A DNA stretch of 64,000 bases from Hyaloraphidium curvatum SAG 235-1 (taxonomy: Eukaryota; Fungi; Monoblepharomycota), in the NCBI GenBank assembly GCA_025558095.1, contig JAIVFI010000008.1, forward strand, positions 791,322 through 855,321. The letters run 5' to 3'. Of this stretch, positions 29,026 through 33,147 are shown piece after piece; within the stretch, counting starts at the first letter, position 1, and the number at the start of each line of letters is the position of its first letter. The notes under the pieces were generated by a model that was given only the letters and a program-made list of their open reading frames with translations, was not told the DNA's origin and did not search any database. The position numbers and the translations under genes were made by a program.

Positions 29026-30443
29026 TCAGAGCCTGCTCCCCTGCCCGCCCTTCAGCTCCCTTGGGCACTCCTTGTGCGGGAACCACTTGGCGTACAGCTT
29101 CTCGAACCTGCCCTCGGCCACCAGCTCCCCGATCGCCTTGTCCACCGCCAGCCTGACCCTGTCGTTGCCGTAGCGGAACGCGACGCCCCACTTCCACCCC
29201 GTCTGCGCGGTCCACGCGATCCGGTAGGGCGACTCGGGCCCGACGAGGTGGCCAAAGGCGCAGTCGTCGTCGATCACGGCGTCGACCTCGCCGGCGTCGA
29301 GGGCGGCCATCATCTCGCCCAGCACGTTGTCGTTGGCGCCGTCGAACGGCACGGCGGTGGAGCCGTATGTGGCGTAGGTCTCGGCGAGCTTGTAGTTGGT
29401 CGAGCCGGTGATGGCGGCGATCTTCTTCCCGGCGAGGTCGGTGAAGCCCCACACGGGCGAGTCCTTCTTGACCAGGACCTGCTCGTCCACGACGATGTAC
29501 GGCCGCGTGTAGTGGTAGTACTTTTGCCGCTCCGGGGTGATGGCGCTCCCGCAGAACTGCGCGTCGACCTTGCCCGAGAGCACCGAGGGCTTGAACTTGT
29601 CCCAGTCGGCAAACACCCACTCGATGCCCAGGCCCATGTGGTCGGCGACCATCTTGGCCGCCTCGGGCTCGTACCCCGAGCGCCGCTGGGTCTTGACGTC
29701 GTCGGTGCGGAACACGGGCCAGGCGGTGAAGGCCGCGCACACAAAGGTGAGCTTACCCGGGTTGACGAGGGGCAGGGCCGACGGGTCGGAGGGGTCGGCG
29801 TCGGGGTGCTCGATCTCGAGCGGGGCAGGGCGGCCCGGGAACAGTTTCGACCACATGTCCTTCATGGCCGTGAGCGAGCGGCGCTCGACAATGCCGCGGA
29901 GGCGGTGGTGGTCCTCCTCAGCGGTCTCATCCGAGCCGCCGAACGCCGCGGGGAGGTCGACGTACTTGGGGAGCCCGTCGGTGATGTCCTTGATGCCCGA
30001 GGTGTAGAAGATGTGGGCCGACGGCTTGAAGCGGGGGTCCGTGACGCGGCCGTCGGCGCCGTGGTTGGGAGTGGTGAACATGTCGAGGTCTGCGAGGGGA
30101 TCAGTGGTTTGACGGGGGAAGGTGACCCAGCAGGCAACCCACAAATGGCGTCCTGCTTCAGGTGGTGCAGCTTGGCGTAGACCTTGCTGCCGCACGTTTT
30201 GCAGGTCAGCCGCTCCTCCTTGCCGGTCGTGTAGGACGACAGGTTGTCGGCGCCGCGGACGACTTTGACGTCGCCGGCGTTGAACCCGCACAGCGTCGCG
30301 TAGTCCGCGCTCAGCGCCCGGCGGCACTGGCTGCAGTGGCAGTACACCACGAAATTGGGCGGCGCGGGCACGTGCACCTCGCAGGCCTTGCAGAGGCACT
30401 GCGCGACAGCCGCGGGGCGCGCCGACGCCGCGACGAGCGCCAT
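29026..30443 (-). CDS. Fusion of a GFA/CENP-V zinc domain and a bacterial family-3 amino-acid solute-binding domain, with PTS1 (SRL)
   Basis: CLC..CHCSQCRR..CKTCGS and HIFY..DGLPKY (GFA); intron 30090-30142; then GKLTF..GYEPE..GLGIEWV..WD..GKVD..AITPERQKYYHYTRPY..DLAGKKIA..GST..GEVDAVIDD (SBP_bac_3); ends QGSRL*. The true start may lie further upstream. Confidence 0.82.
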
Positions 30444-30924
30444 CGCGGGAAGGGAGAGCGGGAGGCCGGCGGGCGAGAGGGGCAGAAGACGGAGGCCGGC
30501 TCGCAGGTGGAGGAGGTCGCCGATGAGGCCCAGCAGTCGCTGCAGCACGGGCGGCAGAATCGTCTTGATCGTCGATTGAAGAGGTGGACGGGCTGGTGCG
30601 GACCCCCACCCTCGATCAATCGGCGCCACGTCAGCTGGGCCAGCGATATGGAGCATGAGCTGGAGCGGCATGGAAGCTGCGGAAGCTATTGGAGAAGCAG
30701 GTTTTTGGTGGATTGACTGATTGACTGGCGGAGCTGGATGCGGGCCAGCTGCAGGCGCCAAGGTCCGAGAACTGCAGGAAGTGGTAAGCTGCACCATACG
30801 AGGACTTTTGTGCTGAGTTTCTCATTTAGTAAGATTCTGATGCCGATGACATTGAATCAATGAAATTGGGTGTGTGCAGGGAGCGGTTCTCGCCCCTGCC
30901 GTCCTGACCGGGAGACACGCCGCG

Positions 30925-33147
30925 ATGCCCGCCTCGCTCCCTGCGTCCTCCGTGCGCGTTCCGCCGTACTCGCGCGAAACTGCCGAGCGGCAGATGGCGG
31001 ATCTGGCCGCGGCGCGGGCGCGGGCAACTTTCGACCCGGAGAAGATGACCGAAGTCATCTACGACCCCGAGACGCGTCGGAAGCGCGCTCAGGCGCTGGA
31101 AATCGTTCAGAACGAAGAGATGCTGGTCAAGCTGATCGATGACTGGCCGTTTCTCGGGGATTTCGAGCGTCGGCAGCGCACCTGGCCGGCCATGAAGCGG
31201 CTCGCAGAGATCCAACTCGGCCGAGGACTGTCGCCCGACGACATGCTCTACGTCTTGAACCTGCTCGGCGTGCTCACACCGCTCTTCAACCACCAGCAGT
31301 CCTTCCAGGCCGCGAACCTGACCAGCCACGCGTCGGACGAGCAGCTGGCACACTGGGGCCCGCTCGGCGAGTCGTTCCGGTTCTGGGGCTCCTTCGCGCA
31401 GACGGAGCTGGGCCACGGCTCGGCGGTATCGGACATCGAGACCACGGCCACATACGACCCGGCCGCGCAGGAGTTCGTGCTCGACACGCCGACCCTCTCG
31501 AGCACGAAATGGTGGATCGGCGCCCTGGGCACCTACGCCACGCACTCCCTGGTCATGGCGCAGCTCATCGTCGGCGGCCAGCGCAAGGGAATCGCCCCCT
31601 TCCTCTTTCAGGTCCGCAACATGGACACGCACGAGCCCCTCCCGGGCATCTACGTCGGCGAGATCGGCCCCAAGCTCGGCCCCGTCGAAAACGGCTGGCT
31701 TCGCCTGGACAAGGTCCGCGTGCCCCTCTCTTCCCTCCTCTCCCGCAACCTCCGCGTGCTCCCGGACGGCACCTTCCTCCGCCCCAAGGACTCGAAGCTC
31801 CTCCTCGGGGGCATGCTCGTCCGCCGCACCGAAATTACGGCGTCGTCGGCGCGCGCGCTGGCAAAGGCGTGCACGGTCGGGGTACGGTATTGCGAGGTCA
31901 GGAGGCAGAACAAGGGCGTCGGGGAGGAGGCGAAGAAGGGCGGGGAGGCGGCGGTGATGGGATATCCGATGGTCAAGATGAGGATCCTGCCGGCGCTGGC
32001 CGCGGCATACTCGTTCGCGTTCGTGGGCAAGTACCTCGTGGGCCTGCTCAACGGGTACCGGACGAGGATGATGGCGGGGGACGAGGGCGCCGCGGGGATG
32101 CTGAACGACTTCCACCCGACCCTGAGCGGCCTCAAGGCCTACTGGTGGGCCCTGCTCCCGTCTCCCCCATTTTCACCACTCAACCCCGCTCCCTCTCAGC
32201 ACGACTACCGCCGCCGATGGCATTGAGGACATCCGCCGCTGCCTCGGTGGGCACGGCTACTCCCACGCTTCGGGGCTCGGCCTGCTCTACGCTCAGTGGT
32301 CTGTCTTTACGACCGCCGAGGGCGAGGCGGTGCTCATGACCCAGCAGACGGCGCGGTACCTTGCCCGGCTGGCGGGGGAGCTGAAGAAGGGCGGCGGGGA
32401 GGGGAAGGTAAAGGGGAACGTGGGGACGGCCTATCTCGCGACGCTGTGGGAGGAGGAGGCCCCGTGCGCGGCCCGAAACCCCGCCGAGTTTGCCAACCCG
32501 GCGATGCAGGTCGCCCTCTTCGCCCACCGCGCGCGTCGGCAGGTCCGCGAGCTCGTGGCCGCGCTGGACGCCTCCCATGGGGAGCTCGGCCTCTGCGCCG
32601 CGCAGGCGTTCGCCGCCTCCACCGCGCACACGCAGCACCTGATCGTCGCGGTGATGTGGAACAAGGTCGACGAGCTGCGGAGGGAGGGGACGGACGGGAA
32701 GGTGGTGGAGGTGCTGGGAAAGCTGGCGGCGCTCAACGGGGCGTTCCTGCTGGCCAAACACTTCGGGGAGTGGCTGGAGGACGGGCACCTCGATGGGGCG
32801 CAGATCAAGGTCGTCCGTCAGCTCGGTGGGTTCAATCCTCACTGCCTCCACATGACTGCTGACGCCCCCGATCCCGCGCAGTCCACGACATCAACGACGC
32901 CGTCCGCCCTGAAGCCGCCGCCCTCGTCGACGCCTGGCAGTTCTCGGACCTCGAGCTGCAGTCCCAGCTCGGCCGCGCGGACGGCAACGCGTACGAGGGT
33001 ATGTTCCTGTGGGCGCTGCGGGACCCGGTGAACAAGGGGATGGGGGGGAAGGCGGTGTTTGATGGGTATGGAGAGTTCCTGAGGCCGTTGATCACGGGGG
33101 AGGTGGCGGCGGAGGCAAGGAGGGCGAGGGATGGGCCTAAGCTGTGA
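30925..33147 (+). CDS. Peroxisomal acyl-CoA oxidase
   Basis: FAQTELGHGS, TKWWIG, GEIGPKLG..ENG, RRCLGGHGY, TAEGE, LGRADGNAYE; two short introns (~32145-32199, ~32826-32881); ends RDGPKL*. Confidence 0.93.

Follow-up and report, generated by a model that had tools for sequence, protein, structure and literature searches.

Little is understood of the biochemistry of the large GFA/CENP-V family of zinc proteins. Gfa of Paracoccus binds glutathione, showed no measurable catalysis of adduct formation and may be a carrier; a catalytic role of Gfa itself is disputed (PMC4682968). A Gfa-family protein was reported to confer glutathione-dependent inactivation of fosfomycin (bioRxiv 10.64898/2026.10.07.757220). 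Family-3 substrate-binding proteins (SBPs, Pfam family SBP_bac_3) such as LAO/HisJ, GlnH and ArtJ are periplasmic and belong to ATP-binding cassette (ABC) importers, a class defined by a leader peptide or lipobox and by permease and ATPase partners. A precedent for this fold leaving transport for metabolism is cyclohexadienyl dehydratase (PheC), which arose from an amino-acid binder and is periplasmic and catalytic. Here we describe a gene of the fungus Hyaloraphidium curvatum SAG 235-1 that joins a GFA domain to an SBP_bac_3 domain of bacterial ancestry. It lies on the minus strand at 29026–30443 of the window, i.e. the whole analysed stretch of 64,000 nucleotides (positions 791,322 to 855,321 of contig JAIVFI010000008.1), and all coordinates given below are window positions. 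In our view known parts are combined here into a new domain architecture, with an evolutionary history that appears well supported and a mechanism that would be of interest.

The two-exon gene is real. Exon 1 (30143–30443) starts with the ATG at 30443, comprises 100 codons plus 1 nt and covers about three quarters of the GFA/CENP-V zinc domain. It is followed by a 53-nt phase 1 intron (30090–30142, GTGGGT...CAG), which was recognized from sequence and homology, and by exon 2 (29026–30089), a single open frame encoding the C-terminal part of the GFA domain, a linker, the SBP_bac_3 domain, the tripeptide Ser-Arg-Leu (SRL) and the stop codon; the product terminates with ...KGGQGSRL. The frame shifts if the 53-nt intron stays in. 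The spliced junction AI-Y-LDMFTTPNHG agrees with AIYNDMFTTPNHG of unspliced metatranscriptome proteins with two GFA domains (P0044-type), and an orthologue, described below, carries an intron at the identical position and phase. The GC content of the gene is that of the surrounding window. The initial annotation had proposed that this intron joins the GFA domain to the SBP domain. The intron, both domains and the intronless SBP part were recovered, but the intron lies inside the GFA domain and not between the domains. The complete GFA domain, the motifs AITPER, YTRPY, GST and VDAVIDD, the absence of a signal peptide and the SRL end, all noted there, are confirmed.

Profile, similarity and structure work was done exon by exon, with exon 1 and exon 2 as separate queries. 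Exon 1 matched the GFA family (PF04828) with an E-value of 9e-14 and 51.9 bits (cut-off 24.3). As in other family members the zinc-ligand pattern CxC, CxCxxC, CxxC is located in the N-terminal half; all seven cysteines (C16, C18, C35, C37, C40, C81 and C84) are intact and have aligned counterparts in Paracoccus Gfa (1x6m) and in 3fac. As this series of cysteines begins at residue 16 and the orthologue has kept the start MALV..., there is no space for a signal or transit peptide at the N-terminus. On protein P0044 the Pfam match spans residues 4–120, corresponding to model positions 3–114 and reaching up to HIFYT, and mapping via P0044 assigns model positions 88–114, approximately, to the start of exon 2. 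This segment (29905–30087), containing the C-terminal strands and the subfamily tail LDMFTTPNHG...HIFYTSG...LPKYVDLPAAFGGSD...HH, is 62–68% identical to proteins with tandem GFA domains (P0043–P0051). Together with the exon 1 match these data indicate that the GFA domain is complete, including its C-terminal strands, and is split over exon 1 and the start of exon 2. The tail being coded in exon 2, the junction of GFA and SBP falls within a single exon; the fusion is therefore independent of the splice and correspondingly firmer.

The similarity of the GFA half to Gfa itself is low (E 0.11 for 1x6m), and the equivalog model for S-(hydroxymethyl)glutathione synthase (TIGR02820) gave 25.6 bits compared to a cut-off of 234.55. 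These scores argue against orthology of the GFA half with Paracoccus Gfa, from which the protein further differs by the helix and SBP domain that follow its GFA domain. Its nearest relatives are the tandem GFA-GFA proteins P0043–P0051 from marine eukaryotic metatranscriptomes, and in a search of the Hyaloraphidium genome with P0044 this gene was the best match. By these similarities the GFA half is eukaryote-type and not bacterial-like.

Exon 2 matched SBP_bac_3 (PF00497) over exon-2 residues 132–337 with an E-value of 1e-25 and 90.1 bits (cut-off 26.4). The two-lobe binding domain, delimited by the Pfam match, AlphaFold2, Foldseek and sequence matches in the Protein Data Bank (PDB), occupies 29053–29772 and is devoid of a signal peptide. 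In the AlphaFold2 model of the exon-2 product, a check the initial annotation had proposed, the SBP part reached a predicted local distance difference test (pLDDT) score above 90. Ahead of it the model and the orthologue alignment delimit a linker (29773–29931) consisting of a predicted helix of about 30 residues (exon-2 residues 53–82) and a Pro/Asp-rich coil, while the GFA fragment was unfolded, as expected without exon 1. The best Foldseek match was the reconstructed binder AncQR (4zv1) with a target-normalised template modelling (TM) score of 0.83; the top matches, with scores of 0.82–0.85, are binders of arginine/glutamine, glutamate and N-substituted glutamine, and the PDB sequence matches are binders of polar amino acids. 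The domain thus shares the Pfam family, the two-lobe fold (TM 0.83–0.85) and an Arg/Asp pair with the periplasmic binders LAO/HisJ, GlnH, ArtJ and AncQR, whereas it lacks their signal peptide or lipobox and is located C-terminally in a predicted intracellular protein.

In an alignment of 23 family sequences (A1) only six columns are invariant, two of which are R83 and D170 in SBP-domain numbering. R83, the Arg of AITPER (29527–29529), aligns with the Arg of TITEER in AncQR and is a putative ligand of an alpha-carboxylate; D170, the second Asp of VIDDD (29266–29268), aligns with the Asp of VVTDN and is a putative ligand of an alpha-ammonium group. Both thus correspond to the Arg and Asp with which amino-acid binders hold their ligand, a role that we take from R77/D161 of LAO and R75/D157 of GlnH. 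With the equivalog models of named binders (cystine FliY/TcyJ, LAO, GlnH, ArtJ, EhuB) the highest scores were 89.6 bits, where the cut-off is 256, and 76.4 bits, where it is 312. As these values are far below the cut-offs, the ligand is not readable by homology. A search for look-alikes in the ESM Atlas returned generic SBP_bac_3 clusters only.

The closest non-fungal matches to the SBP domain are bacterial proteins of 230–260 amino acids, mostly from Actinomycetota, with 33–45% identity. They start 3–8 residues ahead of the fold and have no signal peptide. We regard these leaderless SBP_bac_3 proteins of Actinomycetota and some Pseudomonadota, found for example in Gaiellales, Arthrobacter ginkgonis, Yaniella, Mycolicibacterium senegalense and Candidatus Njordibacter, as the direct parent family, with which the fungal domain shares identity over its whole length and common invariant residues. 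The bacterial proteins are single-domain and encoded in operons, while the fungal genes carry introns and a tail ending in S/G-R/K-L, and Hyaloraphidium adds the N-terminal GFA domain.

We tallied the neighbours of this family in 60 bacterial loci (L027–L086), which were gathered with a 7-sequence family alignment and belong to Gaiellales, Solirubrobacterales, Arthrobacter, Yaniella, Leucobacter, Nesterenkonia, Kineosporia, Gordonia, Mycobacterium/Mycolicibacterium, Rhodospirillales and Candidatus Njordibacter. A glutamine-synthetase-like gene (Gln-synt_C) ends at or overlaps the start of the SBP gene in 24 of the 60 loci, and a PhyH-family dioxygenase is adjacent or one gene off in 29. A Peptidase_C26 gene of the gamma-glutamyl hydrolase type is found nearby, mostly directly downstream, in 15 loci; aldehyde dehydrogenase (10/60), M20 peptidase (6/60) and GntR/FCD regulator genes (18/60) also recur. 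Five metagenomic contigs showed the same types of neighbours, and L048:6568–9439 and L028:5721–9784 may serve as example operons. No ABC permease or ATPase was detected beside the SBP gene or among the annotated recurrent neighbours in these loci; in one locus a sugar-type ABC system (SBP_bac_1/BPD_transp_1) is located about 5.5 kb away. Neither the fungal domain nor its bacterial kin thus shows the features by which importer SBPs are classified.

Breakdown of amines via gamma-glutamylation, as in the Puu and Ipu pathways, proceeds by a glutamine-synthetase-like ligase, an oxidase or hydroxylase, an aldehyde dehydrogenase and a C26-type gamma-glutamyl hydrolase. The bacterial neighbours belong to exactly these Pfam families and by analogy probably serve the synthesis, hydroxylation and cleavage of gamma-glutamyl amides. 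To our knowledge an SBP-like component is not part of the described gamma-glutamylation pathways, and the fungal gene differs in having none of these enzyme genes as neighbours. Judging by its operon partners, the leaderless family appears to take part in the breakdown of small molecules inside the cell, and its assignment to transporters to be an error: its members carry only the label 'transporter substrate-binding domain-containing protein', and we found no paper on a leaderless SBP family beside glutamine-synthetase-like genes. The family is widespread, and its labelling as a transporter part matters for annotation as well as for the understanding of gamma-glutamyl-amine catabolism.

In a maximum-likelihood tree of 50 sequences (LG+C20) the leaderless family was separated from the periplasmic family-3 SBPs at 100/100. 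Hyaloraphidium, its relative with the orthologous gene and Gonapodya sp. JEL0774 grouped together (87/85; 88% of bootstrap trees), and this group was sister (86/92) to a Gaiellales-like actinobacterial subclade several nodes deep within the bacterial sequences. A phylogeny of the SBP domain, also proposed in the initial annotation, thus places the three fungal sequences in one group inside a bacterial family, which together with the 33–45% identity to the nearest bacterial kin bears out that the SBP half was acquired horizontally. That it derives from a periplasmic or lipoprotein importer component and was repurposed in the fungus does not hold, given that the bacterial donors are already leaderless and located in enzyme operons; the change from a transport role to partnering enzymes inside the cell thus took place in bacteria, before the transfer. 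The Gonapodya gene (KAJ3341014.1) is a stand-alone, spliced SBP gene ending in GKL. From the nesting of the fungal group, the simplest history is one old transfer from bacteria, after which the Hyaloraphidium lineage joined the gene to GFA, and since Gonapodya retains a stand-alone copy, the transfer is older than the fusion. According to the tree the donor probably belonged to the Actinomycetota, and the distribution suggests an ancestor of, or an early member of, the Monoblepharomycota, to which Hyaloraphidium belongs, as the recipient.

The best protein match to exon 2 was P0001 with 72% identity, encoded on a contig (L001) of a Logan assembly with a GC content of 55%, compared to 68% at the Hyaloraphidium locus. 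The order GFA, linker, SBP is the same as here, the protein starts with MALV and ends with GRL. The gene contains four introns, two in the GFA part, one of these being the intron of shared site and phase, and two in the SBP part. In both species the frame stays open from the GFA tail into the SBP domain, and the linker is conserved and collinear without a single indel. Between the two species the proportion of nonsynonymous differences (pN) is 0.10–0.20, compared to a saturated proportion of synonymous differences (pS) of 0.62–0.78, which corresponds to a ratio of nonsynonymous to synonymous rates (dN/dS) of about 0.13. The saturation of silent sites shows that the fusion is old, and the substitution pattern indicates that purifying selection acts on it as one unit. 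We have a clean and datable case in which a bacterial gene entered an early-diverging fungal lineage, gained introns and a targeting-like tail and was joined to a native enzyme domain.

The architecture had been described as unfamiliar, and apart from the orthologue no second protein combining GFA and SBP_bac_3 turned up when 5.8 billion proteins were scanned by word search. Nor was such a fusion present among the best 150 matches of an exhaustive search covering 1.84 billion representatives, where all candidates with an N-terminal extension were inspected: these were Gln-synt_C merged to SBP by frameshifts, or Cache and tandem-SBP proteins. A metagenome scan yielded only GFA-GFA transcripts, and we found no relevant literature on a GFA+SBP_bac_3 architecture or on gene transfer in Hyaloraphidium. 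Fusions based on distant SBP subfamilies may exist. The apparent fusion of Gln-synt_C and SBP, P0187 (L023:7001–8263), is encoded on an actinobacterial contig from long reads in which many gene calls are broken; in all likelihood frameshift errors have joined two adjacent genes.

The C-terminal SRL (29029–29037), which ends a short tail in the exon-2 translation, matches the canonical type 1 peroxisomal targeting signal (PTS1) [SAC]-[KRH]-[LM] together with the following stop codon. The nine bacterial homologues compared at their C-terminus have different ends and no such tail. All in all, peroxisomal targeting of the protein seems to have an even or slightly better than even chance.

How might the two halves work together? 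The invariant Arg/Asp pair, and the occurrence of the family among enzymes for gamma-glutamyl amides, point to a clamp for a gamma-glutamyl or amino-acid ligand. We propose that the SBP domain would close on a small ligand, for which glutathione or a gamma-glutamyl conjugate is the most plausible candidate, by gripping its gamma-glutamyl (amino-acid) end, and would thereby hold the ligand with its reactive end at the zinc-cysteine site of GFA, to which it is tethered. Tethering would raise the local concentration for glutathione-dependent C-S chemistry, for instance the capture of aldehydes or electrophiles, and the SRL end suggests the peroxisome matrix as a possible site of reaction. We take the streptococcal protein GshT to be a member of SBP family 3. 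It is on record as a glutathione-binding importer protein, as a citation in PMC9239160 indicates. The glutathione link of the GFA domain is drawn, by analogy, from literature on other family members; ligand, chemistry, domain cooperation and location are all proposals. Taken as a whole, a selected chimeric gene with a bacterial SBP that hands its ligand over to GFA is in our view a fairly probable explanation. Its fully specified form, a new eukaryotic enzyme in which a Venus-flytrap domain of bacterial descent, permanently linked to a zinc-thiolate GFA domain, would supply it with glutathione or a gamma-glutamyl conjugate in peroxisomes, is put forward tentatively and is rather doubtful. If it were true, the bacterial parents would represent an undescribed class of cytoplasmic 'substrate-holder' proteins for gamma-glutamylation pathways. 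The partner domain, with its readable pocket, provides a handle on the substrate of one GFA subfamily.

Several observations weigh against this proposal. The choice of ligand is a guess, with similarity to the binders of cystine, Lys/Arg/Orn and Gln far below the family cut-offs; at the positions of the Ser/Thr pocket residues of LAO and GlnH we find Gly/Ala, as judged by eye from the alignment. A GFA gene was not found at any of the 60 bacterial loci, where a scan of about 2,100 open reading frames (ORFs) for the zinc motif gave a single match without a Pfam domain. The ends of the orthologue (GRL) and of the Gonapodya protein (GKL) fit only the loose PROSITE pattern [STAGCN]-[RKH]-[LIVMAFY], i.e. 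the PTS1 is weakly conserved, and the amidase/acyl-CoA oxidase (ACOX) neighbourhood of the Hyaloraphidium gene is absent from the 13-kb contig of the orthologue. For splicing and for the status of the gene as a single transcript the evidence is homology. The grouping of the fungal sequences into one clade has only moderate support (87/85), and their branches are long. Finally, proteins of the bacterial cluster gave no significant tblastn match in the Gonapodya contig (L021), in L001 or in the window.

Instead of delivering a substrate, the SBP domain might serve as a regulatory sensor, an option already raised in the initial annotation, that binds a free amino acid or other metabolite and switches GFA on or off allosterically. 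The Arg/Asp pair that would hold a free alpha-amino acid is preserved, and the conserved helical linker, rigid-looking in the model, could pass on a conformational change; SBP_bac_3 domains act as sensor modules in many multidomain bacterial proteins, and the exhaustive search gave many proteins of 1000–3000 amino acids with several SBP stretches, one of them with Cache domains. The nearest bacterial relatives, however, are single-domain proteins of catabolic operons and not signalling proteins, and we know of no allosteric regulation of GFA domains; we hold a sensor to be unlikely. The position of the bacterial gene between ligase and hydrolase, resembling a pathway step, would also fit a leaderless family that is itself catalytic, in which case the fungal gene joins two enzymes of one pathway. 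AncCDT-1, the reconstructed ancestral precursor of cyclohexadienyl dehydratase, and the dehydratase are indeed among the sequence and fold matches. Yet AncQR and ArgBP, the top matches, are true binders, the binding-type Arg and Asp are invariant in the family and a catalytic residue set was not identified; unlike in PheC, binder-type residues are kept and nothing points to catalysis, which gives such a bifunctional enzyme a distinctly low probability.

The remaining alternatives question the fusion protein itself. Internal methionines in the linker could allow two separately transcribed genes, a truncated GFA and an internally initiated SBP, or the locus could be a decaying chimera without function. 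No Hyaloraphidium protein covering the SBP domain is present in the collection of 5.8 billion proteins, although the adjacent ACOX of the same contig is. This absence suggests that the public annotation of the genome lacks the gene model. Against separate or decaying genes stand the last quarter of GFA, which shares one exon and one frame with SBP without a stop in two species, the indel-free linker, the dN/dS of about 0.13 and the intact set of seven zinc cysteines and binding residues, leaving this alternative very improbable. The intronless SBP part and its greatest similarity to bacterial proteins would also be expected from bacterial contamination or an assembly chimera. That has next to no probability: the SBP part shares its exon with GFA sequence of eukaryotic type, the locus lies on a fungal contig of 855 kb and is flanked by spliced genes of the fungus, the GC content matches the window, the SBP part of the orthologue contains two spliceosomal introns and Gonapodya has a spliced copy. 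Contamination is ruled out by the introns of the orthologues together with the exon shared with GFA. We thus favor the selected chimera with ligand hand-over as the explanation of the locus.

The gene is transcribed divergently from the ACOX gene, with which it shares an intergenic region of 481 bp (30444–30924). The ACOX protein (P0223) starts with MPASLPASS at 30925 on the plus strand and ends with GPKL. On the other side lies a spliced amidase gene (PF01425, 27092–28946, plus strand), the last ORF of which ends with GSKL. Three neighbouring genes, encoding amidase, GFA-SBP and ACOX, thus carry PTS1-like ends, which speaks for a peroxisomal location.

In Gonapodya the SBP gene (L021:1–13459, JADIIX010000034.1) is situated less than 6 kb from a Gln-synt_C-containing gene and a GATase/Peptidase_C26-like gene. 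We considered these neighbours as a co-transferred pathway and rejected this, as they have no significant similarity to the genes of the bacterial cluster; the arrangement may be coincidence. Because of this dissimilarity there is no sign of a pathway transferred along with the SBP gene. Matches to the bacterial ligase and PhyH proteins elsewhere in the Hyaloraphidium genome have only 30–37% identity and are located on other contigs.

A genome-wide search for PF00497 matched, apart from the gene described here, only one distant paralogue. This second leaderless SBP_bac_3 gene (L003:1465–2142, plus strand; contig C39, about 465.8–466.5 kb) is an ORF of 225 amino acids with a Pfam E-value of 1e-11. 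In a quick tree it was placed on a very long branch among periplasmic-type binders and therefore probably represents a separate acquisition. The metatranscriptome relatives of the GFA half (P0043–P0051 and contigs L091–L098 from the Joint Genome Institute) contain two, possibly three, tandem GFA domains. The GFA family is also expanded throughout the Hyaloraphidium genome, with about 20 matches to PF04828 that include a tandem pair on contig C30 and several matches with an in-frame TGA.

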